63,290 bases of DNA, filler included, from Guillardia theta CCMP2712 (GCF_000315625.1; 4 parts of 4 records of this genome joined end to end with filler, not necessarily neighbours in it), one strand, 5' to 3'; positions 16,550 to 53,949 are shown, counted from the whole stretch's first letter. The notes: a model not told the origin generated them from the letters alone. Numbers and translations are program-made.

Positions 16550-17330
16550 GCTGACCCCGTGCAGCCAATCACGATCTCTGTGTCCTTCTTGTACCTGTAC
16601 CTCGCAATCTGCGGCTCCCAGCTCGACTTGCGTGCTGTGGTGAGGAGGAGGTGAGCGGCAGGCAGCGATGGCTCGTTCACACTATGAGAGGTCACGCAAG
16701 GAGGAAGGTGGTGGTGAAAGGACCAGTAGCAGCAGAAGCAGCAAAGGCACAATCGTTGTCTGACCGTCAAACAAGTAGGTCACAGATCGTTCGGACCCTC
16801 TGTTCACATCCACTCGCTCCACTCGCTCGCTGCACCCTGCAACTGCCTTCAGTGCTCGGCGAGGGGCGGGAGAAGGATGGGCCCACCATGGCACGGGCAA
16901 GTCGAGGGGATGACGATGTCGGTTTCGAAGCTCTGCGGCAAGCATGAGACGGGCTGACAGCAGCTGCTCGTTGGTGCTCACCTTGTCCTCTCCTGTTTTC
17001 ACATCCGCACAGGTTGGGTACGCGTTGTTCTGAGAAAGCCCGTCAAAAAGACCTCCCGACAGTCTGGACAGCTTCCTTACGGGGTTGAGCGCAAGGAGAT
17101 GGGCAAACCCTCTCCTGAAGTGACTGCAGCCCTGCCTCTTGCAGATCTTGCACATGGGCATCTGACCTTGGGGAGGGGTCGCCCAGTTGCCCATCCTCAT
17201 GGACTCCCCTGCCATGGCCCGCTGTCGCTATGCAGGACCGAGAGCGTTAAGTAGTGACTTGAAGCCACTCTCTGTCATACAACAAGCTCCATCTCTTCGA
17301 TGATGACGACCGTCAATGCGAGGCCAGTGG
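16550..17330 (-). CDS. Probable spliced hypothetical gene, function unknown
   Basis: Coding-like exon MGNWATPPQGQMPMCKICKRQGCSHFRRG..TGEDK followed by a GT donor; no family recognised. Confidence 0.35.
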
Positions 17331-26153: not shown

Positions 26154-26924
26154 GTCCTGAGAAATCTGCTTACTTCCCTCCCTCCCTCCCTCCNNNNNNN
26201 NNNNNNNNNNNNNNNNNNNNNNNNNNNNNNNNNNNNNTTAATTAATTAANNNNNNNNNNNNNNNNNNNNNNNNNNNNNNNNNNNNNNNNNNNNGGGAGGT
26301 GTGGGAGGTCTAGGAAGTTCCAGTGATTACCAGATGAGGGTCTACAGTCACGGCAGGGAACAAACCGCAGCCAACGCGGGAAAATCATGCGGGAAGGGGG
26401 AGGTAGAGAGGGAGCAGGGAAGAGATGCTCTGCTTCAGATGCTTTAGCTAGGACACCAGGGAGCTACTCTGAGCATGAAGGTAGTTTACAAGNNNNNNNN
26501 NNNNNNNNNNNNNNNNNNNNNNNNNNNNNNNNNNNNNNNNNNNNNNNNNNNNNNNNNNNNNNNNNNNNNNNNNNNNNNNNNNNNNNNNNNNNNNNNNNNN
26601 NNNNNNNNNNNNNNNNNNNNNNNNNNNNNNNNNNNNNNNNNNNNNNNNNNNNNNNNNNNNNNNNNNNNNNNNNNNNNNNNNNNNNNNNNNNNNNNNNNNN
26701 NNNNNNNNNNNNNNNNNNNNNNNNNNNNNNNNNNNNNNNNNNNNNNNNNNNNNNNNNNNNNNNNNNNNNNNNNNNNNNNNNNNNNNNNNNNNNNNNNNNN
26801 NNNNNNNNNNNNNNNNNNNNAACCGGATCAGCCGAAATGAGTGTCACGAAACGACGGAAATCTTCGAACTGAAAGCCGATCAGAACCAATCACGAACATG
26901 CTCACTTGACAAGTTCAAAGATGG

Positions 26925-27505
26925 AATACGAGTCTTATTAGTTACAAGTATCAACGTAACNNNNNNNNNNNNNNNNNNNNNNNNNNNNNNNNNNNNNNNN
27001 NNNNNNNNNNNNNNNNNNNNNNNNNNNNNNNNNNNNNNNNNNNNNNNNNNNNNNNNNNNNCGTAACGAGTCTCATTAGTTACAAGTATCCAACGTAACGA
27101 GTCTTTTTAGTTACAAGTATCAACGTAACGAGTCTCATTAGTTACAAGTATCAACGTAACGAGTCTTATTAGTTACAAGTATCCAACGTAACGAGTCTTA
27201 TTAGTTACAAGTATCAACGTAACGAGTCTCATTAGTTACAAGTATCAACGTAACGAGTCTCATTAGTTACAAGTATCAACGTAACGAGTCTCATTAGTTA
27301 CAAGTATCAACGTAACGAGTCTCATTAGTTACAAGTATCCAACGTAACGAGTCTCATTAGTTACAAGTATCAACGTAACGAGTCTCATTAGTTACAAGTA
27401 TCAACATAACGAGTCTCATTAGTTACAAGTATCAACATAACGAGTCTCATTAGTTACAAGTATCAACATAACGAGTCTCATTAGTTACAAGTATCAACAT
27501 AACGA
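26925..27505. repeat. 31-bp tandem repeat (CAACGTAACGAGTCTCATTAGTTACAAGTAT), interrupted by a gap
   Basis: About 14 visible copies after the gap; no spacers. Confidence 0.95.
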
Positions 27506-29724
27506 CTGCATCATCGCTTTGCACTGTCACTCAGTGACTATCAACATCACCGATGGCATCAAGTCCCTGAACCGCCTTCTCGTAACCTACCATTGTGCTA
27601 CCGCCGGCTATTTCTGGCCAACCCGGCGGACCTAACTTCAAAGTTCTCAGGCTGCGGCATGTCCTGAATGGTGCCCCCGAGACTCCGATTAGTGTCGCTG
27701 CCCGGGGCCCGGCCGCCGGGCCGGGCCCCGCCCGAACTCAGTTTTTACACGGTTGCTTGCCGGCACCGACCGAAAAACTACTAGGCTAGTGACCGGCCGG
27801 GCCGCGCGCTCCGAGCGAGGCTCACTGGCCCGGGGCTCGGCCTGGCGACCGTCGGCCAAGGCAAGCTCAGTTTGCCCGTCCCCGGGATAGCGTTATGGAC
27901 CGGCAGCCTGAGCCTCGGAGTCCGGCGTGCCAGGCCCCCGGGGGCCGGCCCCGGCTGAGGGACAACTTGGCAAAGTTGGCAAAGCGGCGGCTCCCGCTCG
28001 TCGGACTCTGAATGGAGTCACCGGGGTCGTGCTCAGTGTCAGGCCGCTGCCGCGCCGCGGCCATCGGACTCGGGATCGGATCATGGACTCCGGCGAGCCT
28101 CGGAGGCGAGTCCGACCGTACACTGACAGAGAGACTCGCCTCAGACCGTGCGGACGGACGGGGGGCCGGACCCGCCGCCGTCCAACTGAGCATCGGCCTG
28201 ACCGTCACCCCGGTTCAGCGGGTGCGGCACCGTCCGGGGCCCGGTTCACCGTTTGCCGCTCAGTCACTGCCGCCGCCCGGCACTGAGCTCTCCGGTGACT
28301 CTCGATGGCTCCACTCAATTCTAAAATTACTCAAAGTTAAGTGAAATCAGTATCAACAAGCTAGCTGAATCGAATAAGGAAAAAAAAACCGGAGCTCACT
28401 GGAGACATGTGCATTTTAAAATGATTGTGGTACTATACAACATTTTAAAACTGAGCTACCTAACTGGTAACTTGTAGATGAAAATTATTAAGTACAATTT
28501 GTGGTACTACCGGGTGCTCTATTCTCGTACTTCTAAAACTTTTTGAGTTCAAAACTCTTATTGTCAGGTAAAAAGGCATTTTTAATCTTTTAAAAACAAT
28601 ATAGAGGACAGAGATGGTGATGACTTGACTCACTTCGAGTGAGGGAACAACCCCCCACCGGTCATGGGCTGATATGGCATCAAAGGGGGTGGGGTACCTC
28701 ATTTGTTGTTTCGCTTTCCCCAATTTTTTGTCCCACTTTACCCCACGACCACCCCCCCTTGAGCCAAAACTTCTTGAGCTGATCCACGGGTAGTCAAGGT
28801 CGTGTGGGAGGTAGGGTGGTATCCAGGAGCAGCAATCCAAAAAAAAGTTTGAGAAAGGTTTTCCACCCCACCCCCAGAGATTTCCACATAGAGTACCCCT
28901 CCATAAGAGGTACACGCGATAAAATTCTAAAATAGTTGTAAAGAAGATAAGTTTAAAATTGATGATTTCAGTTGTGGGTCAGGTTTGCGTCCAAGTAGGG
29001 GTGGTCTGCGAAGGAGAGTACCACGGGTAGTCCAATGATCTTCTTGTGAACTTGGAATTGTAAGGGTGGGTAGGGTGGTGTACTGGAGGATATTGTTGGG
29101 TTGATACGACAGAGGGGGTAGGGGTAATAATAATATTATATATCATTATATTATTAGATTTAGGAGGAACGCCGAAGGGGTGGTGGGGGAATACAGAGCG
29201 TGTCGTTTATGTTGAAGGGTGGGGTATATCTCGGTTTGTAGAGGGGGTAGGGGTAGAGGGCGGTGTGCTGTAGTGGGGGTGGATGTAAGAATTAAGAAGC
29301 CAGGCAGGGGTTGTGTGAAAATGGAGAGAGAGGCGAAGGGATGTGAAGCAATGGAGGCAGTGAGGGAGTAGAGGAGAAGACAAGAGGACCAGGATGACGA
29401 GGAACGATGTTGACCAATGCGAGGAAGTCGAAGAGGTATCGAAGAGGTTTGATATGGCGGGAGGGGAGAGGAGGGCATGGGGGAGGGCTGGAACAGAATT
29501 GGACCAAGAATGTATCAAGAATGTATTCAGGGGGAAAGTCTTTTATACATAGCAATGAAACAATGCAAAACTGAAAGATCGATCCAGAGGGATGAAAGGG
29601 AATGAGAAGTAGTGTGAGGTGGGGAGATCTACAGCGAAAGGAGATTATGATTGGTGACTGATGCTCATCAAACTCAGGTGGGCGACAGCGGCGCCGGATG
29701 CAAGTTTCTTGTTGGGCAGCAAGG

Positions 29725-31701
29725 ATGGACGAAGAGAGTTGGTTCAGATCGCGAGCGCAAGCTCTTGAGCAACAGAACGTTCATGATGCGAGCATACTTT
29801 CAACCCACCCCACGGCTTCACATGTGCTGATGAGCAATGATTTTTACAGTGGAGGACATCCTTCTTTCATGGCCAGAGTCGACGCTCAGGATTCGATGCC
29901 TGAATTGAGCAATGCTTGTTCGCATTCTTTCCAGGGTTTGCATCAAGTTGATGATACGTCAGTTGTTTTCTTTCAAGAGACTGGTGGAAATTTGCAACCC
30001 TGTCAAAGCGTTGCTGAACCATCTTATGCCCCGGCCTCGTTACATGTGATAAATTATGCGTCAGGCTACCTGGATCAAGGGCAGGGGACAGTAAGCCAGG
30101 CGTCAGGCTACCTGGATCAAGGGCAGGGGACAGTAAGCCAGGGGTCAGGCTACCTGGATCAAGGGCAGGGGACAGTAAGCCAGGGGTCAGGCTACCTGGA
30201 TCAGAGGACTGGAAACATTACTACTCCGCAGGTAGGTGTGTCGTCGCATCCATCATGGTCCAGCAATGAAGGGTACTCGGATCAGGGACTCGGGTCCTCT
30301 GTCTCTGGACTTTCGCCGGGATCTTTTGCCAGTGATGGCTGTCCATCCCCTGAATGGAGTGAGGATGCGAGTGAGCTGTCTGCCGTTGCGTCAGACTCGA
30401 CGTTAAATCTACAACAACGGTCACATCAAGGCGATCCATGGTGTGACATCGGTGCTCATGATTACCAATTTCAGCTCGCAGGCTCTGCGATCTCTCGAGG
30501 AGAACAAATAGATTTCCAGGATGGTGGACAAGATTTTCCCACCTTTCTTTCTCCTGCGCAAAATCCGTTTCCAATCATTGATCGTTCAGACAAAATGCTT
30601 TCCAGAGCATGTTCTTTCTGCAAGAAACGGAAATTGAAATGCAGCCAGGTTCGACCCTGCGGAAATTGTTCAATGCGAGGACGATCTGCAACGTGTGATG
30701 CGACTGTAGTCCTTCCTAACTCAGCTCCATCGTGTGCAGTTGTGCAGCGGCCGCTGTACCATTCGCGCAGTATCAGCTTTCGGGACAGCGACGCTTTCAC
30801 GCGGGTGCTGATGGCCGCAAAGAGCGTGGGCATCAACCCGATGATTCTTCGAAGAATTTGGGAGGTCGGTCTGAACCCAGACAACTTCATGAGTATAATT
30901 CTCAACATGCCACCCGTGATGAAGGCAGCCTTCAATGAGGGCTGCGAGGTGCTGAGCAAGAGGTACATTCTGCATTTACAGAAGATGCGAGGTCAAATCG
31001 CCGCCCCGCATCCTCGTTCAATGCAACAGCAGCACCTCTTCTCGCTCGTCTTCGATGATGCTGAGGCGGAGATTGCTCACGTGAGCAGAATGTTGGGGCA
31101 CGAGCGCTTCTTGTGCTTTACCTTCAACCCGGAGAGTGGGGAGCGAATAAGATGCTCGCTTGGAGCTGACTATGCTGAAATCTTCGGGTTGCATACTGAG
31201 GAGTTCATGGCAAGGCTAGCGTCAAATGACCTTCCGATCCCTTCGACTGAGATCGACATGTTCTGTATCGTTGTATATTACTTCTGCAATGGTCTTAACG
31301 AAACATGTGATTTCTATGTACGACTGGACAATTACGGCAGCTCCAAGCAACATGTTCCCAGTATCTACAGGCATACGGTTGTGAAGGAGGATGACTGCTG
31401 GGGAAGGAACATTCGAACCATCTACTCGTTCGAGCCAGTAACTCCGGAGAAGTTCGACGTGATGGTCAAGTATCAACCCGAGAGAGTGCGGCCTTTCTCA
31501 AAGCTTCTTGGTGATGAGCGAACGTACGAGCAGCTGCTGCAATCGCATAAGAGCGACATGCAGTTCCGAGGAAAAATCGCCTACTGGAGGAAGTCGGGAG
31601 TTCAGCGGAAGAAGCTGGAGGTATTGGGACAGCACATGATGGCTTGTTTCAAGGAGGCTGCAGGAAAGCTGAGCGAGGTGCTGGAGAGTGTTGGAGGGTA
31701 A
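29725..31701 (+). CDS. Zn(II)2Cys6 binuclear-cluster transcription factor with 14-aa tandem repeats
   Basis: RACSFCKKRKLKCSQVRPCGNCSMRGRSATC; 42-nt repeat (SGYLDQGQGTVSQG) at 30061-30205; start could be 29698. Confidence 0.85.
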   Translation: MDEESWFRSRAQALEQQNVHDASILSTHPTASHVLMSNDFYSGGHPSFMARVDAQDSMPELSNACSHSFQGLHQVDDTSVVFFQETGGNLQPCQSVAEPSYAPASLHVINYASGYLDQGQGTVSQASGYLDQGQGTVSQGSGYLDQGQGTVSQGSGYLDQRTGNITTPQVGVSSHPSWSSNEGYSDQGLGSSVSGLSPGSFASDGCPSPEWSEDASELSAVASDSTLNLQQRSHQGDPWCDIGAHDYQFQLAGSAISRGEQIDFQDGGQDFPTFLSPAQNPFPIIDRSDKMLSRACSFCKKRKLKCSQVRPCGNCSMRGRSATCDATVVLPNSAPSCAVVQRPLYHSRSISFRDSDAFTRVLMAAKSVGINPMILRRIWEVGLNPDNFMSIILNMPPVMKAAFNEGCEVLSKRYILHLQKMRGQIAAPHPRSMQQQHLFSLVFDDAEAEIAHVSRMLGHERFLCFTFNPESGERIRCSLGADYAEIFGLHTEEFMARLASNDLPIPSTEIDMFCIVVYYFCNGLNETCDFYVRLDNYGSSKQHVPSIYRHTVVKEDDCWGRNIRTIYSFEPVTPEKFDVMVKYQPERVRPFSKLLGDERTYEQLLQSHKSDMQFRGKIAYWRKSGVQRKKLEVLGQHMMACFKEAAGKLSEVLESVGG

Positions 31702-31899: not shown

Positions 31900-32946
31900 T
31901 CACTTCTTTCCGGTCTGGTTCGCCACGCCTTCGATCGCATTTCTGACCATCTCCGGGTCACCGAGGTAGCGGCCGGAAAGAGGAGCGTAAGCGCCTTCAG
32001 CCCTCACGGGCTTGAGGTTCTTGTCGAGCTTGTAGACAAGGGGGATGGCGGTGGGGATGTTGAGAGAGCAGATCTCCTCGTCGCTCAGACCGTCGAGGTA
32101 CTTGACAAGAGCTCGGAGGGAGTTCCCGTGAGCTGCCACAAGGACCTTCCTGCCACTCTTGATCGCTGGAGCACAAACTTCCTTCCACCACGGCAGGACT
32201 CGAGCAACAGTGTCCTTGAGACACTCAGTGCTTGGAAGGTCCTTCAGGCTTTTGTGCTGTGGCTGATTACCCGCCCAGTATGGGCTGTCAGGCGACATGG
32301 GAGGAGGAGGGGTGTCGTAGGAGCGTCTCCAGAGGTTCACCTGCTCACTGCCATGCTTCTCCACAGTTTCTTTCTTGTTCAATCCCTGGAGAGCTCCATA
32401 GTGGCGCTCGTTGAGTCGCCAGTCCTTGTCCACAGGGATCCAAAGGAGGCCGAGGTCTTCCAATATGAGCAAGCCAGTCTTGATGGCGCGTTGAAGAAGG
32501 GAGGTGAACATGACGTCGAAGCTAAATCCTTCGCTCTTAAGGCTGTTGCTTGCTCTCTTGGCCTCGTCGATTCCAGTCTCAGCGAGGGGAACATCCACCC
32601 ATCCTGTGAAGCGGTTCTCCTTGTTCCACTGAGACTCCCCATGTCGAACGAGCACCAGGGTGTAGTGGCCATTCTCATCAAGTCCATCTTCTGCCGACTT
32701 GCCTCCCATCATTTCCTTCAAACGCTCGAGCATGCCTCCTCGCAGTCGCAGCGGAGCGCGCACTTCATCGGCTACGCCTGCTCGGGAAGTAAGGAAAGCT
32801 GATGAAGGAAGGGGAGCTGACGCTCTCAAGGAGGAAAGCTGAGACGAGAGCGACAGAGGGGACGAGGACGAGGGCGAGCACGAAGGGTTCGAGGCCGCCA
32901 TCGCCGCCATCGCCGCCGCCATCGTCGCAGTGAGCCAAGAAGCCAT
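31900..32946 (-). CDS. gpmA: 2,3-BPG-dependent phosphoglycerate mutase with N-terminal targeting extension ending in LRLRGG
   Basis: [62 protein letters not shown]. Confidence 0.95.
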
Positions 32947-33792
32947 CGCGGAAGTAAGCGCAGGTCGTAACGGGAAGGACACAAGGAAGGGTGGTATGAT
33001 TGATAGGGGTAGGGGTCATCTAGGGTAACTGAAAAAATGATGGGTAGGGTAGTCTAAACTCCATGCAGACCCATAAAAAATCCTAATCAATATACTCAAA
33101 ATGAGGGGTCATGTCTCAGGTTTGAAGCAAATACTAGGGTAGGGGTACTCATACAGTTGAAAGGGCAACACCATGTTGATGTTCCTCGGGTGGGGTACTA
33201 AGAGGGGGTGATTATTAGGTCGAAAATGGGGGTACTCAGGCTCAAATAATTGGGGTTGGAGGGGTGGGGGGTATCACCACCCCTTTGCAGATGCGAACCG
33301 GTACCCATTCCAACAGATTGCAGGGCTACAGTACCCGTCGGTGCAACCCTTGAAAGTTTGGAAGTTTTGTATGCGGAATGTTTCAAACAAACTTTTTGAA
33401 GAGTGACACTCTTCAAAACTTGAAACTTTCAACGTACAGTCAAACGCCGTGGCAATCATGCGGCGGCCGCGCGGCCTGAGCCTACGGTTGGCACCGTACG
33501 GTTCGAAGGCTCTCGCCGAGGATCGGAGGGCCCAGGCGGTCAACGACGTCACAACTCAGTGACTGTCAATTTACTGAGTTGGACCGAGGCGATGTTAAGG
33601 TACGTCACTCTCAGTGCCGGCGGCTTGGCCGCCGAAGTCAGAGCTTGGCCCTTCACTTCAACGCCGTCGTCACAGACGCAGTGACTGAGTCGACTGAGAG
33701 CCTGGTGTAGGACTCTCACTGTCAATGAGCTTGCGAACTGCTGGATGCATCACGGCGACACAGGCCGGGCGGATAAACTGAAACGGTTCGAG

Positions 33793-41630: not shown

Positions 41631-41667
41631 AGGGTTTAGGGTCTTGACTAAGAGTCTAATAAACTCA

Positions 41668-41707
<40 letters not shown>

Positions 41708-41728
41708 GGGTTTAGGGTTTAGGGTTAG
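41631..41728 (+). mobile_element. Severely 5'-truncated retroelement stub (41643-41706) between TTTAGGG repeats
   Basis: AGGGTTTAGGGT|CTTGACTAAGAGTCTAATAAACTCA(AAT)n|AGGGTTTAGGGTTTAGGG; the same CTAATAAACTCA+(TAA)n end occurs at 44911-44945. Confidence 0.7.
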
Positions 41729-41783
41729 CCGGGCCCGGCCGCGGAGGCCGGGCGGCGGCACCGGCGGCTCAGACCGGAGGACT

Positions 41784-42475
41784 ATGGAACATCCGATCAT
41801 AACCTTTTCCAAAGGTTTAGCCCATATACTTCAAACAGCTTTCCGACTAAGCCTAGTATGGTTCTTCAGTATGATGAAAGTTCGCAACTTGCAACATGCT
41901 GTATTGGAGATCATGCCAATACGACCTCGTCGAGAGGGTGAAGAGGCCTTCGCGAAGCGTTTTCCTAACAGTAGGACAGCTCAGCTGGCAGGCTTGCAAG
42001 CCCCCGCGGCTGTGGAGGGATGCACCCCCGACGCTATGACTCATCGCAGAACTGAGCCATCCGCTCGACATGTACGGCCCGGTCAGCAGGCACGACGTCA
42101 TCTGCATGACTCTCCTCGGACTGATCGTACACTCAGTGCAAGAGAGTAAAGCAATCATGTGGAAGGCTCCGTATAGATCCGAGATAGCGAGTGCTGATGA
42201 GATCCCGGTGACCGTACTGTTTCCTTCCTCCGCAATGCACAAGCGGAGAAGCTCTGGCAGGGAAGAGAGGACTTCACGATCGATGGTCGCAAGTTCACAG
42301 ATGTACATGTGAGCATCGTGCACGATCGATCTTTCAAGATTCGAGCCAAGAGAGGACGACAGCAGAGATTGCTGACGTCTACCGCTATCAGCTGCTGCGC
42401 ATGCCAGGCTGGTCGCTGGGCCAGGGGGCCAGCAAGATCTGGAGACAGAGGGAGGTCGAGTGGATCGTCTCCTCG
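41784..42475 (+). pseudogene. Frameshifted and internally deleted N-terminal half of retroelement ORF1
   Basis: AFAKRFPNSRTA ~ EFARQNPKSRTS; GLIVHSVQESKAIMWKAPYRSEIASADEIP ~ GLIVDQTQDSRSLIFKAPLKPDLVQAAEIP; AEKLWQG ~ AEKLWKG; REVEWI ~ REVDWI. Confidence 0.8.
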
Positions 42476-42546
42476 AGGGTTTAGGGTTTAGGGTTCAGGG
42501 TTTAGGGTTAGGGTTTAGGGTTAGGGTTTAGGGTTTAGGGTTTAGG
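42476..42546 (+). repeat. Interstitial telomeric tract (TTTAGGG with TTAGGG/TTCAGGG variants), followed by 21-bp x3 (CGCCGTTATTTTCGGCAGCAG)
   Basis: Direct. Confidence 0.95.
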
Positions 42547-42890
42547 CGCCGTTATTTTCGGCAGCAGCGCCGTTATTTTCGGCAGCAGCGCCGTTATTTC
42601 AGTTTTGGCAGCATGGCTCCTCGCCAGGTGTAGGGGAAGCCCATGCCGTTCACGGTTCACAAACCCATATGCAGCCCCTAGCAAATCTGGTCTTTTTTTT
42701 TTTTTTTTTTCTACTTTTTTTGGGGTTCACATGGGGTCCGTATACACACTCCCTGTTGACTACCCCCTGTTTTCACCGGCCGGATCAAAGGGGGGGGGGG
42801 GGGGGGGGTAGAGAGACTGGACATAAGCGGGGTGGGATGATTTGAATTCCTCTGGCGTGGAACCCTTCCCCCGCCTTGGACGGTTTTAGA

Positions 42891-42996
42891 GGTTTAGGGT
42901 TTAGGAGGCCGCCGGACTCAAAAACAGGCCGCCGGACTCAAAAACAGGCCGCCGAACTCAAAAACAGGCCGCCGGACTCAAAAGCAGGCCGCCGGA
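42891..42996 (+). repeat. Short telomeric tract followed by 20-bp x~4.5 (AGGCCGCCGGACTCAAAAAC)
   Basis: Direct. Confidence 0.9.
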
Positions 42997-43341
42997 CACT
43001 CCATCCAGCCCATGCCGTTCACAAGGCCATATGCAGGCTCTAGCAAAATTGGTCTTTTTTTTTCTCCTTGGGAAGGGGTTCATATATACACTTCCATTCA
43101 GCTACCCCGGTTTTTGCTCTCTTACTGGGGGGTAGTGAGACAGGGATAAAGTAGGGTGGGGTGATTTGAATTATACTGGCGTGGTACCCTGTCCCCCCGG
43201 CCTTACTTTTTGAAGCACTTCATTTTAATTGTTTAGTCAGCGCTTCAATCATACACATGTACGGATGAAGTGCCTCTGGTACAGTCTGTACTATTCTTTT
43301 AAAGTGGTTTCGACAGGCGTCTCGAATCAGCCTCCACCCTA

Positions 43342-44523
43342 GTGACTTCCTTTGTCTGGAGGGGTAGAGGACCGAAAGATTCTCTCATACCCGTGCATTT
43401 CACTGTATCACGGTACGTGGGGGTGCTAATGGAAAAGAAGGCATTTCGATTGCCGTTGGAGCTCACCACGCCAATACCGAAGGCATCAAGGATGCAGAAG
43501 AAGGCAGGCGGCAAGGACGGCAAGGAGATCAAGATCATCATCAAGTCGACGGCGGCATCTGGTCGCTTCACGAGGAAGGAGATGGAGGGGCTGTGCAACG
43601 GCGGCAACACGTCTATCGCAAGAGTCAAGAGAGTCTTGTTGGAGATCGCTAACAGGCTCGAGATCAACGTTGAAGGCATCGACATGGAGGAGGATTTGAA
43701 CACCAAGTCCTGGAACGGGTCCAAGCTATGCATCCTCCTCGGCTCCACGGAGGATGCTCGACGCATGATGAAGGAGCTGCCCTTCTATCTCGAAGGCGCA
43801 GCAACCAAGCTCGAAGCAGTCGGCTTCGACAAGGAGCCTGACTCTGAGGCGGCTGGTCAGCGGGGCACCAGCGACGCAGCGCAGCGACAGGAGGAGAGCG
43901 AGGGAGAGTGGCTGGAGTTTACAGACCTGGAGAGGATCACAATGGAGGCAGCATCTCCGTCAAGCCAAGAGGACATGCAGCTCGTCAGCGAGCTGTCAGC
44001 AGTCATCGAAGATGCAGCTTCTTTGAACGAGGCAGGGACGAGCGAGCCGATCAAGCTGGTCCTGGACAAGGCCGTTGGCAACCTCCACGACACCTTCTAC
44101 TCTCCGGGGAGCCTGGAGTTCATGTCGCTGGGAGAGTGGGCGAAGATGCCAGAGGAGCAGGGAGTTGGGCGCAACGCGCTCAAGGAGAAGCTGGGGAAGT
44201 GGCTGCAGAGCAAGCGCTGGACTCGCGTGCAAGGAGAGAGCAAGAAGGCAAGGAGGGGCAGCGCGTTCTCGCCACGGGCAACGGCAGCTGCTGAGCTTGA
44301 GCAGGAGGCGGAGAGCGACGACATAGAGCGTCGATCTCTTAGCCTCCTGTTCATAGCACTGAGTAAATTCGCAGAGATGCATGTGCTGGCCTGCTCGCTG
44401 AAGGTGGACAAGAAGGACCGACTGCGAGTGGAGATGAGGGAAGATGGCGAAGAAGAGGAAGACATGGAGGAAGAGCAAGGCGAGGGCGAGGAAGAAGACG
44501 GGGCGAGCCCGTACCGAGCTTGA
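43342..44523 (+). CDS. Open C-terminal half of the retroelement ORF1 homolog (first ATG 43429)
   Basis: SGRFTRKEMEGLC ~ SGKFSRNEIEKIC; WNGS..ARRMMKELP ~ WDGS..ARKMMAEFP; SPGSLEFMSLGEWA ~ SPGNASFPTLQEWA; KARRGSAF..LLFIAL ~ KARKNSAF..LLFIAL. Confidence 0.8.
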   Translation: MTSFVWRGRGPKDSLIPVHFTVSRYVGVLMEKKAFRLPLELTTPIPKASRMQKKAGGKDGKEIKIIIKSTAASGRFTRKEMEGLCNGGNTSIARVKRVLLEIANRLEINVEGIDMEEDLNTKSWNGSKLCILLGSTEDARRMMKELPFYLEGAATKLEAVGFDKEPDSEAAGQRGTSDAAQRQEESEGEWLEFTDLERITMEAASPSSQEDMQLVSELSAVIEDAASLNEAGTSEPIKLVLDKAVGNLHDTFYSPGSLEFMSLGEWAKMPEEQGVGRNALKEKLGKWLQSKRWTRVQGESKKARRGSAFSPRATAAAELEQEAESDDIERRSLSLLFIALSKFAEMHVLACSLKVDKKDRLRVEMREDGEEEEDMEEEQGEGEEEDGASPYRA

Positions 44524-44544
44524 GCTGAGCCCAAGGTAAGGAGA

Positions 44545-44762
44545 GAAGGTAGGAGGCGACCGAAGGCCAAGGTGAGGAGAGGCAACTCTCCTGACTGAAG
44601 CTGAGGAAGCTGAATGGAGGACGAGTAGGTGGCGACCGAAGGCCAAGGTGAGGAGAGGCAACTCTCCTGACTGAGGCTGAGGAAGCTGAATGGAGGTAGA
44701 GTAGGTGGTGACCGAAGGCCAAGGTGAGGAGAGGCAACTCTCCTGACTGAGGCTGAGGAAGC
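44545..44762 (+). repeat. 76-bp tandem repeat x~2.8 in the 3' UTR, each copy with an AGGAGAG-GCAA-CTCTCCT hairpin
   Basis: Period 76 (44555, 44631, 44707). Confidence 0.85.
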
Positions 44763-44945
44763 CAAGAGAAGACAGCAGAAGTAGAGAGTAGAAAGACGCC
44801 TCAGAAGCAGGGTTCGCATTGTAGGCCGTGTACTCCCAGTGCTCGAGCGCCTCATTAGACTAGGATCAAATTGCAAAAGCCCACAACGAGGCCGAGCAAC
44901 ATTCTAGCATTCTAATAAACTCACATAATAATAATAATAATAAAT

Positions 44946-44987
44946 AGGGTTTAGGGTTTAGGGTTTAGGGTTTAGGGTTTAGGGTTT
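44946..44987 (+). repeat. (AGGGTTT)6 telomeric tract between two retroelements
   Basis: Direct. Confidence 0.97.
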
Positions 44988-45188
44988 AGAGGATCCCTTT
45001 ATCTGAGGCATGCAGAGGATCCCTTTATCTGAGGCATGCAGAGGATCCCTTTATCTGAGGCATGCAGAGGATCCCTTTATCTGAGGCATGCAGAGGATCC
45101 CTTTATCTGAGGCATGCAGATCAGCGGGGTCCCTGCGTGGTAGAGCAAGAGTCGCCAGGAACGCAGGAAGCTCGGGAAACCATCGAGA

Positions 45189-47306
45189 ATGCTTCGAAAC
45201 ATGTGGCCAATATCTATTGTGAACCCTGACGAGATCGTGCAGTACCGTACCTCCAGCTACCTCAAGAGGCAGACGGAAGCTGCCACGATGCCGTCATCAG
45301 CCGAACTGATGCGGAGACTGGATGAATTCGCAAGGCAGAACCCCAAAAGCAGGACGAGCAAAGCTCTGAAAGCCAAAGAAATATCCTTGGAAGCCTTAGC
45401 CGAAGCCATCAGTCAGACATGCAGCTTTGCTGAACCCTCGTCACTGGAGAGTGGGGTGACGATGTCAGGCAGTGGTACCTGTCAGAGTTCCAAGCTGACA
45501 GACAAAGGCAGATGGAGGCCAGATCATATGAGGCCAGATCATATGATGACCAGGGCACAAGTGTGCAGACGATTACCATGAAGGTACTTTTCCAGACAGG
45601 TGGAAAACTTATGCCTCAAGCTTGAAGAGCAAGGCTTGATCGTCGATCAGACGCAAGACAGCAGGAGCCTGATCTTCAAGGCTCCCTTGAAGCCTGACCT
45701 TGTGCAGGCAGCGGAGATCCCAGCAGTGATCACATTTGTCCGCAATGAGGCGGCTGAGAAACTCTGGAAAGGAGAAGGTACCTTCAAGGTGGCAGGCAGG
45801 AGGATCCTAGCAGTGAACCCAGCAGCCAACCCACCGATCTCGTTCAAGATGCGGCCAAAGAAGGAGAACATGGGCAGAGTTGGAATCCTAGCTGAGGTGG
45901 CCCAACTCCTGATGCTCAACGATTCGAGCACAGGTGACATATGTGAGATCTACAGGCAACTATGCCTGAAGCAGGGATTAGCGATCATTGATCTGATCCC
46001 AAACGCGGGAATGACAGTGAACCTCCCCCCCAAGAGGAACCTACCGCCAAAGAAGGTGTTCGCTGCGGTAGGAATAGAAACAGTCAACCAGAACAGAGAG
46101 GTCGACTGGATCGCAACGTGCTCGAGCCTTGAAGCAGCGGACATCGTTCTTCAAGCATTTGATCGACATGGAAAGGATCGTGCAGGAGTCACTTTGGGAC
46201 TGGTCTCAGAGAATGACAAAATACTGAAATGGTTCTCAGTGCAGATGGAAGCAACGGCGCTGCACAAGAATATGAAGAATGCGGTGCGACAAGAGGGCAC
46301 GGCAATGGCAACGGGAGCAGAGATGCTGTACTCGGTACAAATCTCCTCTCCTGTGCCGTCAGGGAAGTTCTCCCGAAATGAGATTGAAAAAATCTGCGCA
46401 AGTGATGAAACGGGCAGAGCAAAAGTCATCCGAAACATTCGGAGGGCTGTCGCTTGCTTTGATCCACAGGTGGAAAAAGATCTCCAACGGATCCACCTCC
46501 AATGCGATCCAGAAACAGGGATCTGGGATGGGTCTGGTATCATTCTCCGGCTACGCAGTGAAAGTAGTGCAAGAAAGATGATGGCTGAATTCCCCACACA
46601 GCTCCTCTGCTGGCAAGGCACAGTTGAAATCCAAACGACAGCGAGCAGTCTGAACCTCCAAGTGTCGCCTCAGGCAACTCGCGATCAGTCTAACCCTGAG
46701 GCCAGGTCACAAACGACGGGGACCAGAGCAGAAGGAACTGTGTGGAAAGAGATCGAGCTCAGTTCCATTATCAATGAAATAAACCTCCCAGATGCGGGAA
46801 CGGACGTGGTCGTCGTAGAACTTAAGGAAGCAATTGCTGACGTAACTAGGAGCGAGCTGCAACAGCAAGGGCAGCTTCAACTCCATCTTGATGACGCGGT
46901 GCAAGAGATGGCTCCGGAGAGCCCAGGAAATGCATCCTTCCCCACGCTACAAGAGTGGGCTGATAAGGGGGCCAACGCGGCAGAGAATGCCGTGAGCAAG
47001 CGACTGCGTGAACGAGTCAGGGTGATTGCAGGCAAACATACGTGGAAGGTAGCGAAACGCAAGGCTCGGAAGAACAGCGCTTTCGCACCAAATGAAGAGA
47101 AGCCATTGAAAACTGATCTCCTCTTCATTGCTTTGACGGCGCTCTCCCTCGTAGGAATGCTGGGAGATAGAAACGAATTGAAATTTGTTTTGAGCAGTGA
47201 GCTACAGATGAAAGACGCTCGAATGGAAGATGTACCCGAGGCTGGGAGCATGGCGGCAGAATCGGAAGAGATGTCGCTTGACTCCTTCCCAGCAGCGCAA
47301 GCCTAA
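45189..47306 (+). CDS. Retroelement ORF1 (~705 codons, one in-frame TGA at 45579-45581); no CCHC knuckle seen
   Basis: ORFs 45189-45581 and 45600-47306 are in the same frame; both parts match the upstream paralog. Confidence 0.8.
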
Positions 47307-48150
47307 TGGAAGCAGGAGGAGGAGGAGGAGTTGAGGGCAGGTGGGACAGTGGGCACCAGGGCGTGGTGGAATCAAGCAGAAAGAGACAAGAAGGTGAGAA
47401 AAACAATGACAAGAAAAAAACAGAAAAAAACAGAAAAATACAAACATTCGACTTGATAGGGGAGATCCCCTGGAGTCTACGGGAAAACAATAGAGAGTAC
47501 GGAGCAGCGGCGCTGCTCAACTCAGGAGAAGATGGATTTCTCTCTGAGGACGTTATGGAGGCATTAATCGTTGAGGTAAACCGAAATTTAGAACCAGCGG
47601 AAGACAGATTTCAAATAGCATGGCTCCAAGGCACGAGGTATGCCAGCGAGCAAACTAGAAACCAATTTGGGCTGCAGAGAGGGACCATTGTTCTCCCGAG
47701 AATAGTAGCGGGTTTGAGAGATCAGGAGGGAAGGGCACGGAGAGCAAAACGACTGCTAGCCGGGGCAGCTCAACCATTCTTATTCCCTTGCGTAGAGAAC
47801 GGCAATCATTGGATCCTAATCGTGGCAGATGTTAACACAAAAAGCATACACATCGTCGACTCGCTTAGCACGGCCCTTGAGAGAGACCTGGGGACAGTCA
47901 GAAGCCAAAGGGAGGCACAGTTTCAATTGGGGGGCGCACAGCGAATGGACCTAGCATCACTCATGGCGACGATTATCACCGAGGCAATTAGCGATCAACA
48001 AGAACACTGTGACGACACGGCATGGAGGGCATGTGTGTCAACTGGGCTGCAACAAACAGACGGCTACAATTGTGGAATTTTCGTTTTGCTGCATCTGCTG
48101 CTGATCGCAAAGACACGAAGGAAAACACATCAACACAGGGAGGCAACAAG
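47306..48150 (+). CDS. ORF2 N-terminal Ulp1-like (peptidase C48, SUMO/Ubl) cysteine protease
   Basis: FLFPCVENGNHWILIVAD..IHIVDSL..QQTDGYNCGIFVL: His-Asp-Cys triad plus oxyanion Gln. Confidence 0.88.
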
Positions 48151-51100
48151 GCGTCCCCCCCCATCAGCAATGGCTCATGCGAACAAGACCGTGGCATCGG
48201 ACATCTGCTGCTGGATGGGCTCTGGGGGGGGAGTATGGAACATGTGCACATGCGAGAAACAACCCAATGCATCTGCAGAGCTCTACAGCACGCGCAAGAT
48301 ACAGGTTACAAGGAATGGCAAGCTGCAGAGCTCACCATGGAACGTATACCTAACCGGATGGAAAGGCGAGAAGACGGCCAAGAACGCGCAGGCGATCTAC
48401 AGGCGACCCAGGCATCTGAAGATGCACGGCTACAGGAGAGATTGGAAGACGAGCAGGAGCAAGGAGGACAAGGATCAACGAAGCTCATAGCCGCGACGGT
48501 CCTGCAACTACAAGACAGGTCAGCACAGGTAGACATCCTGACGTCCTCCCCTCCCCCACCTCCTGCTTCATGCCCCGTCTCTCCACTCCAGCCACCTCCT
48601 CCGCCACAAGCAATGCACACAGCGCCAATCTCGAAGAATGACAAGGAGACAAGGGGAGAGGAGGAGCTACCAGGCCCAACAAAGATGCAAGATGGGAACT
48701 CGTCTCACCTTCAATGGGCAACGGAGGCGGAGGAGCAAATCCTACCAGCAGGCAGCAAACCACCCACGACTACCACCGACAGGTCAGTGCAATCAACATG
48801 GGTGGAAACGCACAGGAAGGACAACGCCCCTGGCAACATCATTTCTCACAATGTCAATGGATGCAGTCAATTTGTGCTGAAACACATCCTAGGATACCTG
48901 ATTGAAACATATCAACCAACAGTCGTGCTACTTCAAGAAGTTTTGGTCGGGGGAAAACGAAAGGAGGCAGATCTCCGAATGATGATCAAGAAAGAATGGG
49001 GATGCTACCGAGTGTTCATGACGAAAGGTGCAGGGGAGGGGAGAAAGGGTAAGAGTGATCTTCGCCTTGTGACGCTAGTACATGCGGACCTTCTCCCTCG
49101 TCCCTCCCCCCTGCTCTGCCGCCGCGCTGACATGTTGGAAGAGCAGAATCTCCAAAAAAGAATACAACTTTTACAGATCGGAAAAAAAGAACCGATAGGG
49201 ATCTGTAACACCCACTTTCCTACTGCAGCGCAAGGGGAGGATCAAGACGAGATGTGGGCAACGCTGAGCCAGATGCTCAAGACGGAGCCAAGTGTCAAGC
49301 TCACCATCATAGGAGGCGACTTCAATGCATCTCGACAACATCCAGAGATCCCCATGAGAGTCGGATACGGGAGCAAATCGAGTGTGCACCGTGCAGATGA
49401 GAGAATGGAACAAGGCTTAAACGAACTTGGACGATCCCAGATGGTCACTTGCGAGAAGATGAGCAGAAGCAGCACGCACTTCACCTTCTCCACATGGTAC
49501 AAGCAGGGTCATCACCAAGCAAAACTGGATCATGTCTTTGCATTACACCATCCATCTTGCACAGTAAGCTTAATATCGCAGACCGCAGAGGATTGCATCA
49601 TAGGAGCCGCAGTCGACCACAGAGCACTTGTAGTGAATGTGAGCTCGCTCGATGCTGAGGGTGAGCAAGCCATCCCAAAGATTGAAATCCTCCCGCAAAG
49701 GAGGGATCGAGAAGCAACCCCTCGACGAAAGAAAAGGGTGGTCGAGATGGACAAGCTATCGGGAAGACTAGGCGTGGAATGGGCAATAGCACTTGATGAG
49801 AAGATAAAAGCGGCACAAGCTCTACATCAAGATTGCGACATTCTCGAATTGATAACAACAGCCCTCCCCATCAAGGAAATTCCGCTACGAGGCTCCAGCG
49901 GGAAAAGACATGCATCCAAAATTCAGATGGATCTGAAACGCAAAATCAAGCAACTTCACAAGGACTTAAGAAACGCTTCAGAAATTCCAGACTTTATTGA
50001 TCGCGCACACAAGGAGTCGAGCTTACATGCAAAAATAAGAGAGAATATGACCAAATTCAAGGAGATCTGCGCAGCACAAGACCAAGAGATATTCCTGAAA
50101 ACATGCGAAGAACAAAGAAGACGCTTGGGCACGATAGGGAGTAAAGAGTCTCAAAATGCAATGGGCAAGAAGTCAGACTTTAAGCCCAAAGCCCCAATGC
50201 TGAGTCAACTGCCAGAGAAGTGCCACCCAAACACAATCGAACTTACGTCATGGAGAGATCTCCAGCCAGCGCTGCAACAGCCGGAGACAGCATATCTTCA
50301 AGAACTGAACCCGTTAATCGAGACATTCCTCCAGAGCAACTCCAAAGAATCAAGCAAAACCTTTTGGAGTGCAAGACATCAAACCATGCTGCACGTCGAG
50401 GTTCTCGGGGCGAGGAACCAGGCAACACTGACACAAAAGCTGTTCATAACTCTGGCGCCTGCACACGCAATCGTACCCATCATCCGAGGACTGATCACAC
50501 AGCCAGGAGGGTGGCGCCTGGAAGGATACAAAAACATCGAGCAATTCCTCCCCATGAGATTGGCAAGAGATCTAGAAGATGAAACCCACACGGCAACCTT
50601 CTTTGCAGTCAACGGATGTACCATGAACGGAACCTGTGCAAGAGCTGAATGTCAAACAAAAGGACGACTGATTCCGTTATATGACAAAAGCCAGAAAAAC
50701 GAAGAAGCATCAATCCTCTTCTTCTGCAAAAGCTGTCAATCACTGACTTCCGTCAAACCACCGGACTTCGAACCCCCAGAGCAAATCAATCAACACCCGA
50801 CCAGGGATGTAGAGATAGCTTACCCGCTGGAGCCAGGCGAGATCCAAGTATGGATTCAAAAACTGGCCAACCGGAAAGCAGCAGGCATGGATTTGATTTC
50901 AAACGAGATTCTGAAAGCTCTGCCTGACAGTGCAAAGGAGGAAATAGGCAAGACAATCAGCCGAGCCTTGATCGGAGACAAGCAAACACTAAAGATGCTC
51001 GCGAGAGTTAGGCTCCTCCCAAAAAATGAGATATGTCACGTCTTGGAGAATCAAAGACCTATATGCGTCCTCTCCTCGATAACGAGGATCTTCCAGGCAG

Positions 51101-53949
51101 TCATAGCGCACAGACTGGCAAAAGCTGCTGAAAAACATAAGCTACTCACTAACAACCAGGAAGGTTTCAGACCAGAGGGAGGAACGATCAGGCAGGGTCA
51201 TCGTCTACTCAACATCATCGAGGAGGCTCAGAGTAATCAACACGACCTCATCCTGCTGTACCTCGACTTTGCAAACTTCTCTAACAATGTGGCAGTCGAA
51301 TCCATTGCAAAAATCATGGAAGTATATGGCTTTCACCAGTGTGATGTAGACGTCGCAATCAGTTGTAGCCAAGGGATAGCGCTGCAAATTCAGACAGAGA
51401 GGTTCGAAACAGCAGCCATCCCACTTCTCAGAGGATTACCCCAAGGCAGCCCCGCAAGTCCGCCAAAAACAAATCTTCTGCTCAGCATCTTGTCCAAACA
51501 ACTTGATCAACAACAAGACGAGATTGCAACTCAACACCCTAATAATCTGTCATTTGCAGACGACCTTGTCCTGATAGCACATTCAGTGAGAGAGATGAAA
51601 ACGCTTGTCCAAGTGGTAGAGCGATTCTGTCGATGGAGTGGATTAGAACTGAACACGAAGAAATCTGAAATCACCAGCTTTGATTATCGGCTAAGAAGGG
51701 AGATCCCAGGAACACAGACCATCAAGTTCTTCGACAAGGAGTTTGTGAACCTACCACCGACAAAATGGTTCAAATATCTAGGGATCCGGATCAGCTTGTG
51801 GAGACCAGGAGGAAGAGGCAACAAGGCGCACACCTGCCCCTTCACGTGGGGAGAGAAAGAACACATCTTGGAGAAGACAAAAGAACTGACCAAGCTGATT
51901 GAATCATCTGCTTACTCGGCAGCCCAAAAATATTACCTGGTGAAGGTAGGCATCGTCAATATATTTAGATACTCGGCGGTACTGGTGAGCTGGTCTTGGT
52001 CAGACTTACAAACCTTAGATACCCTCTGGACCAGAGCATTCAAAAGAGCTATGGGATTGAGCAAGAGTACAAGCAACGCTATCTTTCACCTACCTTGGGA
52101 CAAAGGAGGCCTCCAACTCCCCCATCCAGCACCCATCTTGGGAAGGGCGGCGATTCGGTATCTAGAGAAAGAAACGAATAAGAAATGCAGGGTGGATGAT
52201 GATATCAAAAGCAGTCTGATCCACAAACTAACATCATGGTGCAACCAATGGGGGTGTCAAACAATAAACCAGCTACAACGAGAAATCAGATCGGGCAGAC
52301 TCAAAGAGAACGAAGAGATAAGAGGACCGGAGAGACTCGCAATCTGGATAGCGGAAAAAATGCAGACCACCATCAGTTGGGAAATGATTGAAAGCAAGAT
52401 GAAACCGGGGACAATAGCCATCTTACATGACCTGGAGGACAAGATGCTCTCAGAAGAAAACTCCCTGCTGTCCGGAGAAAACTCCCTACCTACATCTCCT
52501 GCTCGGCAAGGCTGGGAGAGTTTTGCAAAGGCATGGAGACTACTGCCCCAAGTAGGCTTCCACTCCATGACAAGTGTCTTACCCGTCCCAGATACCGAGG
52601 GCATCTCCCTGCACCTGCCCATCCGACTCTGGCCATTCCCAAAGCAAAGGGAACAAGCAGAAGACATCCTTGCACAATATCTGCAAGCGAATGTCATCTG
52701 GGCAAAACTCGGACTTGAGCAGGCAGGAACAGGGAAGAGAAGAAGGCCAGCCAGGGAGGAGGGGAAGCCTCTAAACAAGAGAAGGAAAGGAAAAAGGGAG
52801 GCTAGCCCACATGAACTTCAGCCACACAAGAAACTAGCCAGACCGGACCAAGGGAGAGAGGAAACGAATACGAAGGCTTGTACCCGGGTAATTTTGAGGC
52901 GGTGGCTCCAACATGACCCCACCTGTTATGATGAAGGAGGGAATCAGCAAGAAAGATTCTGTTACACTACAAGCAACATACCTTTCAAAGTTCAAGGGAA
53001 CATAGCCATCTTTGAGCGATCTCAAATTGAAGAAAGCAAGACCGTGGATCCACCAATAGAATGGTTGGAAGCGTCACTGGACTCGGCTCCCTTCGCATCT
53101 GCAACAAGGGAAGAGGACGGTAATAACCGAAGAGACTGCAATCAAAGCATCCATCTGCTGCTGGAAATAGTTAATGCATTGGACGACGGCGAAACAGAAG
53201 CTACAGCATGGTGGCAACAACTCGAGGAGGTAGTATCAGAGGTTCGCCAAGAAACAACACAACCATTGGCATACGAGTTTTTACAACATCTAGCAGAGAT
53301 TACAGCATGCGACATCAGTACATTTCGTAACTGGCCTACCCTACACACACATCCCCAGGCTCTGGACAAGAAGAGAGCAAGGGAACTGCACAGAGTGGTG
53401 GTTTGGATGGACAAACAAAAGAGATTTCGTGAACAAATCCTGGATACAATACATGTCATTCTGATAGGATGGAAGAATAACATTGATGAGATACCAGAAG
53501 GTTTTGAAATTATCAGCCGGGTCCCGAAAGGCGCTCAAATAGCTTATGCAGCAAACTTCTGGCAATCAGGGAATAGGTGTTTGATGAAGACTGCAGAGGA
53601 GTTATGGATACTAGTTAGGCACACACTCCCAACATACTTACGAGTCCAGCTTCAGGACAACATCCTCCCAACGTATGAGGAGCTGTGTAACAGACGAAGG
53701 GATCAGATCCAGCCGTGCAGCGATCATCAAGGCGGAAGGCATTTCACAGCAGCTATTGAAGGAGACATCATGCAGGGCAGAAAAAACAGATCCATGCGAG
53801 TAGGATATGTTCTCCAACAAAAAGAGATGACGTCAGGAGGAGGGATGAAAATCAATGGGAAGTGCAGCATCATCCGAGCGAACACAATCGCAATCGGTTT
53901 ACTTCTGCAACATGTCCTTGAGGAAGGAATACAGATCAAAAGGGAAATC
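48022..53949 (+). CDS. ORF2 main part: APE endonuclease (~48835-49640), CX4C..CX2C motif (~50630-50740), reverse transcriptase (~50870-51800), long C-terminus with RNase H-like remnant (~53740-53949)
   Basis: APE: ISHNVNG, VVLLQEV, IIGGDFNA, KLDHVF, VDHRAL. RT: KAAGMD, RPICVLS, QEGFR, LYLDF, GLPQGSPASP, FADDLVL, GLELNTKKS, FKYLGI. Confidence 0.93.

Follow-up and report, generated by a model that had tools for sequence, protein, structure and literature searches.

A probable telomere-repeat-specific Dualen-group retrotransposon and its ORF1-only partners in a scaffold-end array of the cryptophyte Guillardia theta

The DNA considered here is a stretch of 63,290 nucleotides (nt) of Guillardia theta CCMP2712, the window, in which positions 41632-53949 form a head-to-tail array of retroelements of the kind without long terminal repeats (non-LTR elements), the units being spaced by short tracts of TTTAGGG, a telomerase-type repeat best known from plants. 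We read it as a telomeric or subtelomeric array built by repeated insertion of a telomere-repeat-specific long interspersed nuclear element (LINE) of the Dualen group and of non-autonomous partners that carry only the first open reading frame (ORF1), and we put the probability of this reading at about 0.8. Unit boundaries were taken from internal repeats and from comparison with copies at other loci. A preliminary description of the stretch had counted three head-to-tail units; the head-to-tail arrangement is as described, while the count rises to at least five (a stub, two 3'-truncated partner pieces, a partner variant and the large element). It had also suggested a cryptophyte host, rightly, as homologues of the partner open reading frame (ORF) are GUITHDRAFT hypothetical proteins of G. 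theta CCMP2712 on at least 15 scaffolds. The sample on which the following rests is the window together with eight further G. theta loci that were found via the partner proteins, on nine scaffolds. At all of these, and on three metagenome contigs, the elements have repeats on both flanks and a constant orientation.

One line of evidence comes from the junctions between element and repeat. In the window, the junctions T41706|A41707 and T44945|A44946 come after CTAATAAACTCA and a (TAA)n-type tail, which is joined to AGGGTTT, and the 26-bp tandem repeat (5.1 copies) at the head of the large element starts at 44988, immediately after GGGTTT. Both junctions, and the start at 44987/44988, had been placed exactly in the preliminary description, which proposed site-specific insertion at TTT^AGGG. 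Tabulation over the sampled loci bears this out: copies are flanked by telomere repeats at constant phase, and 19 of the 21 3' ends with the terminal motif join as tail-TA|GGGTTT, with tails of 7-40 nt and downstream tracts of 10-110 nt. An exception at L045 has only AGG left ahead of a 5'-truncated copy. The 3' phase is the same in three families with different tails, and the same junctions are found in diverged metagenome relatives, including contigs L001 and L002. On the 5' side, about 24 of 28 junctions fall after TTTAG, TTTAGG or TTTAGGG, a 3-nt span of the 7-nt repeat, often with 1-3 extra bases (P ~4e-6 for such clustering under random phase). As TA is common to tail and target, and AG to the 5' end of the element and the target, the cut site can be resolved only to 2-3 nt. 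A phase that stays constant while tails and tracts vary is the pattern of target-primed insertion at a fixed site, and duplication alone would not give it, though some duplication is evident. A scan of metagenomes with the 20-nt terminal motif returned 38 loci. Only three of them are of use, namely L025, L033 and L014, the last being identical with the L002 contig; the others are chance matches in unrelated DNA.

Position and orientation provide the second line of evidence. On seven of the nine sampled scaffolds, the window's included, an array lies at the extreme scaffold end with its elements pointing outwards; the six others of this kind are on scaffolds of 0.36-1.4 Mb. The array of L046, on a scaffold of 133 kb, is 21-43 kb away from the end. 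All sampled arrays have the sense strand as their G-strand. The window contains 14 telomere-type 14-mers, where shuffled sequence would be expected to give 0.01; every one of them is on the + strand, within 41711-44991. Since + is here the G-rich strand, the chromosome end should lie rightward, where the piece stops at 53949. Every sampled array opens with a short repeat tract right after unique DNA, and the proximal border in the window (41632..41642, 1.5 repeats) has its like at L041, L042, L043, L045, L046 and L048. Within the sampled G. theta loci no copy was found in unique DNA, and none nested in another element without a repeat remnant. An inverted fragment at L041 and an inverted array at L047 keep the orientation of element to repeat. 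The former is a 59-bp 3'-end fragment of a (CTA)n-tailed family (L041 8473-8531) that lies between two + repeat tracts. At L047 12400-18600, + elements are followed by - partner and autonomous copies, head to head, with a C-strand tract at 16660-16701 between them; this arrangement is either an ancient end-to-end fusion, an inverted duplication or a scaffold mis-join.

The autonomous element is known at full length from the metagenome contigs L001 and L002, intact relatives with identities of 87% and 82% to the copy in the window. It measures ~10.7 kb and consists of 5' tandem repeats, ORF1, the overlap TAATG, ORF2, a 3' untranslated region (UTR) of ~750 nt that ends in TCTAATAAACTCA, and a (TAA)n tail. 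The tandem repeats at its extreme 5' end (44988..45120, +) possibly act as a promoter, and other copies have different 19-26-bp repeats at a comparable position. Compared by eye, these repeats vary by family or subfamily around a loose common core of TTATYT, a few bases and GGCA (judged at window 42546-42599 and 44988-45120, L001 1-40, L041 11036-11090 and L045 9168-9230), perhaps a promoter, or a unit bound by protein, that they have in common. An Rfam scan of 42560-53949 gave only a chance-level miRNA match and no 5' ribozyme. ORF1 (45189..47306, +) encodes 712 residues in the intact relatives and is broken in the window copy by a 17-bp deletion near 45589. Neither it nor the partner ORF matched any Pfam or NCBIfam family, no CCHC knuckle or motif was found in ORF1, and an ESM Atlas search gave no usable match. 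Its AlphaFold (AF2) model (mean predicted confidence, pLDDT, 43) is too poor for a fold search; a beta-alpha-beta-beta-alpha-beta stretch at residues 367-469 of this low-confidence model is a mere hint of a fold like that of RNA recognition motifs. The stop of ORF1 and the start of ORF2 overlap in TAATG (47303..47308, +), and ORF ends and starts coincide in L001 and L002 as well.

ORF2 (2573 residues) has the domain order C48 protease, APE endonuclease, reverse transcriptase (RT), CCHC finger and R2-type restriction-like endonuclease (RLE). The C48/Ulp1 cysteine-protease domain at its N-terminus (47780..48124, +) matches Pfam PF02902 (E 1.3e-7, 32.2 bits with a cut-off of 20.7), with H, D, Q and C, read by eye, at the expected catalytic positions. 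Frameshifting indels follow at 48130..48200 (+), where the window's ORF2, compared with L001 and L002, is split by a deletion of 14 bp and an insertion of 13 bp. The APE-type domain (48844..49542, +) matches PF03372 at E 1.8e-4, below the cut-off, and a second single-sequence match, at E 9e-5, falls just under it; in the PDB, a profile of the family and its relatives finds the L1 endonuclease and also ExoIII (E 4.8e-8), and the motif positions QNVNG, LLQE, GGDFNAS, LDH and DHRA are kept in the alignment (again read by eye). The RT (51019..51792, +; PF00078, E 1.3e-25), with the active-site motif FADD, is about equally distant from R2 (E 2e-20) and L1 (E 2e-12).

The C-terminal domain of ORF2 found no match by sequence search against the PDB, and the RLE was recognised only by fold. 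An AF2 model of the last 234 residues (pLDDT 87) placed R2 retrotransposon proteins in all of the top seven positions of a Foldseek search of the PDB (E 9e-10 to 1e-5, TM score ~0.7), with viral PD-(D/E)xK cap-snatching nucleases lower in the same list. In the alignment, which includes an R2-like protein, the C, C, H and C of the finger and the D of PD, K and Y of the PD/E/K nuclease that follows are invariant, with the acidic E position conserved in all but one of the 12 rows. For RNase H there was no Pfam match in ORF2. When the region between RT and RLE was aligned with the relatives' RNase H (hhalign), the probability was 41% and the catalytic D/E/D positions were replaced; what stands there is at best a degenerate remnant, and the region is constrained (ratio of nonsynonymous to synonymous substitution, dN/dS, 0.11). 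Judged from sequence and model, the element is thus predicted to carry two endonucleases, an APE and an R2-type RLE. The Dualen elements are a LINE group that retains the ancestral restriction-like endonuclease beside the later APE, and since this pair is the defining trait of the Dualen/RandI group, domain architecture would place the element there. With an RLE present besides the APE, a cleavage test of the purified APE domain, as first proposed, would be incomplete.

The partners are the second component. A canonical partner is ~2.7 kb long and has 19-21-bp 5' repeats and a single ORF of 701 residues (L044 14279-16384), without an RT, and like the large element it ends in a (TAA)n tail. Its protein is colinear with ORF1 of the large element (30% identity over 667 residues, E 1e-72). 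A third family, at ~50% identity on the protein level, has the same terminal motif and a (CTA)n tail. Over the last 150 nt of the three families, two invariant blocks are all that is common to them: TTAGAC (TTTAGAC in 8 of 10 aligned copies), ~45-70 nt upstream of the end, and CTA..TCTAATAAA.TC at the end; no consensus RNA structure was predicted for the last ~150 nt. Shared ends, ORF1 homology and co-location together support a two-component reading, and the proposal of an ORF1-only partner within a two-component system, made in the preliminary description, is upheld by the colinear protein and the shared 3' blocks. As regards the window itself, the partner there does encode an ORF1 homologue, yet it is not an intact one: it is a 5'-chimeric variant with only the C-terminal half of the ORF. 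A database look-up found no exact record of its protein. Three G. theta proteins match ORF1 of the large element at 84-90% identity, and an ORF2 fragment from the cryptophyte Hanusia phi is 57% identical. A composite of 167 nt of autonomous ORF2 and 85 nt of partner 3' UTR, tailless and repeat-capped, occurs at L044 9498-9746 and 12253-12502; its presence twice in one array points to local duplication or to a new chimeric element.

The window's large element is a dead member of the autonomous family, with the 17-bp deletion in ORF1 and the 14-bp deletion and 13-bp insertion in ORF2. It lacks the CCHC/RLE part and the 3' UTR because the scaffold end cuts it at ~position 8820. The earlier claim of an autonomous LINE therefore stands for the family, which has intact members in L001 and L002, and not for the window copy, which is defective and cut short. 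In another G. theta copy, L048, the frame is open through the CCHC-RLE region. The ORFs of the autonomous element and of the partner are under purifying selection. Between L001 and L002, dN/dS is 0.17 for ORF1 and 0.19 for ORF2 (RT 0.07, RLE 0.12, APE 0.26, C48 0.19); values this low throughout mean that all parts, both nucleases included, have been kept by selection. For the partner ORF, dN/dS is 0.28-0.29.

Expression of the elements is likely, to judge from database matches. Of the partner's sequence words, 50-74% occur in several sequencing runs whose identification as RNA is a guess, and the transcriptome-derived EukProt entries P0003 and P0025 are among the homologues. P0025, labelled as the dinoflagellate Heterocapsa arctica, shares 99% identity with the partner ORF of G. 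theta, probably as prey in or cross-contamination of a dinoflagellate transcriptome; being transcriptome-derived, it indicates transcription of the partner. About half of the sampled 31-mers of the stretch occur in metagenome runs from fresh water, lakes and runoff (X7, X9-X12 and X20); fresh water seems to be home to close relatives, or to these very elements, although G. theta CCMP2712 is a strain that we take to be marine.

The units of the window's array, all on the + strand, can now be followed from its proximal border. The first tract is succeeded by the stub (41643..41706, 64 bp), which is what the preliminary description took it for, the 3' end of the large element: an extreme 5' truncation with the last 24 nt and a 40-nt ATA/TAA tail, 97% identical to L001 10678-10713. 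A tract of ~3 repeats (41707..41727) leads to a degenerate partner copy (41728..42475), identified by blastn and tblastn with the canonical partner of L044 as the 5' portion to ~position 1071 of the 2.7 kb. It is 3'-truncated and without a tail, its frames are broken, and it is capped directly by telomere repeats (42476..42545; ~10 repeats, some variant); 3'-truncated copies capped in this way are found at window 42475, L041, L042 and L044. The second 3'-truncated partner fragment (42546..42883) starts with 21-bp 5' repeats (2.6 copies), after which its sequence is like the 5' region of the next unit, and its first 96 nt also head canonical partners in L043, L044 and L046. A short degenerate tract (42884..42905) separates it from the partner variant (42906..44945), which has 20-bp 5' repeats (4.6 copies), an unrelated 5' region to 43478, a match at 98.9% identity to positions 1228-2691 of the canonical partner, three 76-bp repeats and, at 44911-44923, the terminal motif, with a tail that runs to 44945. 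Its ORF (43429-44523, +; 364 residues when read from the first ATG) corresponds to the C-terminal half of an ORF1-like protein (28% identity to L001 ORF1, E 6e-18). Six telomere repeats (44946..44987) then precede the autonomous Dualen-type LINE, of which the first ~8.8 kb of ~10.7 kb are present (44988..53949; 86.8% identity to L001 1-8820).

The foreign 5' region of the partner variant (42906-43478) recurs inverted, at 98% identity, outside the array at L047 5392-5861; it is a repeat in its own right, perhaps captured by template switching or 5' transduction. The unique DNA beside the array has two ORFs, one at 29698-31701 (+) with a Zn2Cys6 binuclear cluster domain of fungal type, the other at 31900-32982 (-) with a histidine phosphatase domain (His_Phos_1), so that ordinary genes are present no further than 9-12 kb from the array. 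At its left end, the piece holds an AT-rich stretch (26294-27560, 25% GC, the rest of the piece being 50-57% GC), inside which a 31-bp tandem repeat of ~14 copies spans 27061-27505.

As to mechanism, the orientation itself constrains what can be proposed. With the sense strand on the G-strand and the tail distal, the C-strand must prime; since a chromosome terminus offers no free 3' end on that strand, the priming end has to come from an internal nick. A ribonucleoprotein would nick the C-strand within CCC/T/A/AA; the freed 3' OH would pair with the UA of the tail, a 2-nt primer/template pairing made possible by the TA common to tail and target, and would prime reverse transcription, as in SART1 of the silkworm. 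A cut of the G-strand may follow 0-3 nt further on, and a break so placed would leave little or no target duplication. The C-strand cut and the G-strand cut may each be the work of either APE or RLE. ORF2 would be translated by reinitiation at UAAUG, and its protein may copy partner RNAs in trans via the shared 3' blocks. Telomerase would add repeats distally and heal eroded ends; the simplest account of the 3'-truncated, repeat-capped copies would be that elements became terminal, eroded and were then healed by telomerase. Taken furthest, the picture would be one of hybrid telomeres kept jointly by telomerase and a two-component retrotransposon system, the first telomere-repeat-specific Dualen lineage, in which one nuclease would nick the C-strand to provide the primer, the other would cut the G-strand at a distance of a few bases, and the partners would be obligate users of the ORF2 protein. 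We offer this picture only tentatively, as more likely to be wrong than right. If true, it would be an independent origin, in a protist, of the life styles of SART1 and of HeT-A/TART.

Several observations weigh against the main reading of the array. At L033, a metagenome relative (Ga0172373_10077470, 100-200), a partner tail is joined to non-telomeric, gene-like DNA; the junction, which runs tail, TAC, TTTAG and then unique sequence, is the only clear off-target junction seen and may reflect either a rare event at a partial target or chimerism of the contig. Among the 5' junctions, two to four fall out of phase, mostly those of 5'-truncated copies. Several copies have equal tail lengths of 19 or 22 nt, so subtelomeric recombination could have copied junctions and the events need not all be independent. 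L047 (JH992972.1) has its inverted arrays 12-34 kb from the scaffold end, and scaffold ends serve throughout as proxies for chromosome ends. The intact autonomous copies come from metagenome contigs, none having been shown within the G. theta assembly, where the window copy is broken. The trans-mobilisation of the partners is presumed from the sequence they share, and the shared terminal motif contains AATAAA, so that it could be partly a polyadenylation signal.

The alternative that survives best, though we regard it as unlikely, is that insertion was non-specific or nested in the manner of Zepp, that copies survived only in subtelomeric regions, and that arrays and junctions were then spread by ectopic recombination, break-induced replication or segmental duplication. 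Such exchange has left clear traces: the composite fragment and its cap, found twice in L044, are a clear duplication, tail lengths are identical in several copies, L047 is a large rearrangement, and copies on different scaffolds are 97-99.8% identical. On the other hand, phase is constant although tails (7-40 nt), tracts (10-110 nt) and 5' truncation points vary, a single phase is found in three differently tailed families and in relatives diverged by 13-18%, and no sampled G. theta copy lies in unique DNA or is nested without a repeat remnant.

Less probable still is attachment to chromosome ends as in HeT-A and TART, with no cutting of DNA, reverse transcription onto a free end and telomerase repeats added afterwards. 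The position of the elements at scaffold ends, the repeat-capped 3'-truncated copies, which show that elements were terminal at times, and an ORF1-only partner reminiscent of HeT-A would all suit it. It predicts a proximal tail and an element antisense on the G-strand, however, and what is observed is a sense strand equal to the G-strand with the tail distal; purifying selection on both endonucleases and the constrained phase of the 5' junctions also speak against it. Zepp-like nesting and HeT-A-like end attachment were rejected on junction phase and orientation. We give equally little credence to the idea that the telomere-like tracts belong to the element, as read-through transcripts or terminal repeats: the L001 contig does end in a tail, two repeats and the first bases of a next element, which would be read-through if the contig were a transcript, but tract length runs from 10 to >110 nt, tracts cap 3'-truncated copies at arbitrary internal points and also part unique DNA from the first element, and TTTAGGG is a canonical telomerase-type repeat, all of which favours the tracts as target, as the preliminary description had them. 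SART1 transcripts likewise read through (PMC7265360). No statement of G. theta's own telomere repeat was found in the literature.

Insertion at the telomere repeat by a Dualen-group LINE and its partners, the reading that we prefer, has precedents for each of its halves. Lescot et al. 2016 described cryptophyte Dualens with SET, C48, APE, RT, RNase H, CCHC and RLE (PMC5029228). Dualen-1_GCr, like Dualen-5_CCu, comes from the same host group and combines C48, APE, RT, CCHC and RLE in one polyprotein (PMC5029228), and the C48 protease of the G. theta element is of the same type as that of Dualen-1_GCr, the Chlamydomonas Dualen protease being Josephin-like. The nearest database relatives of ORF2 carry SET, APE, RT, RNase H and CCHC/RLE. 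Unlike the cryptophyte Dualens, the G. theta family has no SET domain by Pfam, no recognisable RNase H and a separate ORF1, and neither telomere-repeat specificity nor RT-less partners are mentioned for the former (PMC5029228). A paper of 2025 reports that LINE/Dualen elements are expanded in all cryptophytes but G. theta, which fits a low-copy family restricted to chromosome ends. The nearest outgroup contig, L049, has no telomere flanks. The preliminary description knew of no earlier account, and for the telomere link this holds, in that a full-text literature search found no prior description of a telomere-linked Dualen or of the G. theta family (Repbase, which holds the cryptophyte Dualens of Lescot et al., lay outside the search); for the Dualen group in cryptophytes it does not, since these were already known (PMC5029228). 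What we rate as new is the link between Dualen and telomeres, as telomere-specific LINEs and Dualen elements are each already known kinds.

Other telomere-associated elements differ in kind. MoTeR1 and MoTeR2 of Pyricularia oryzae (and the FoTeRs of Fusarium) are said to be a telomere-inserted pair, one RT-encoding and one RT-less, with shared ends; they are reportedly CRE-like and have telomere-like 5' repeats and no endonuclease other than a restriction-like one, and the MoTeR2 ORF is said to be unrelated to that of MoTeR1. In G. theta, by contrast, the partner ORF and ORF1 are homologous. The Zepp element of Chlorella vulgaris, the subject of Higashiyama et al. 1997, is reportedly L1-like, with a poly(A) tail, and nests in Zepp copies, not in the repeat at a fixed phase. 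A 2023 survey has it as an algal LINE concentrated beside TTTAGGG telomeres, and its list of telomere-inserting retroelements names no cryptophyte and no Dualen (PMC10088271).

In its insertion the G. theta system resembles SART1 and TRAS1 of Bombyx mori (R1 clade), which also lie in the telomere repeat at a fixed phase, beside telomerase-type repeats. SART1 ORF1 and ORF2 reportedly overlap at UAAUG, like the TAATG found here. Membership of the R1 clade was rejected: the R1-type architecture combines a Gag-like ORF1 that has CCHC knuckles with an APE-RT ORF2 that lacks both RLE and protease, whereas the G. theta ORF1 has no CCHC knuckles, ORF2 has C48 and RLE, and the APE profile finds no match to the TRAS1 or R1Bm endonucleases in the PDB. 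The G. theta element belongs to a different LINE group, with a C48 protease and an R2-type endonuclease; its tails are (TAA)n or (CTA)n and not poly(A), its target is a 7-nt and not a 5-nt repeat, and RT-less partner families are present. The likeness in orientation and site that had been pointed out at the start is confirmed, as SART1 inserts in the telomere repeat with its sense strand on the G-strand and at the same T|A position (PMC7265360).

HeT-A, TART and TAHRE of Drosophila offer the other comparison, with a Gag-only element beside RT-encoding relatives in head-to-tail terminal arrays (PMC2173066). The Drosophila elements replace telomerase repeats and attach to the chromosome end with the tail centromere-ward, whereas in G. 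theta the tail points distally, each copy lies between repeats, and the elements have kept endonucleases. To our knowledge, Drosophila provides the one further case in which a Gag-only element is paired with an RT-encoding one at telomeres; the pairing in G. theta, unlike that one, coexists with telomerase repeats. For users of the G. theta reference assembly, a practical point is that scaffolds end in these arrays and that the overlying GUITHDRAFT hypothetical-protein models are transposon ORFs. A further independent origin in a group that stands at the transition from RLE to APE LINEs bears on the evolution of target specificity, and the element provides a natural system for the role of each endonuclease in target-primed reverse transcription. 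The G. theta system is apparently an independent version of the telomere elements of the silkworm and the fruit fly.

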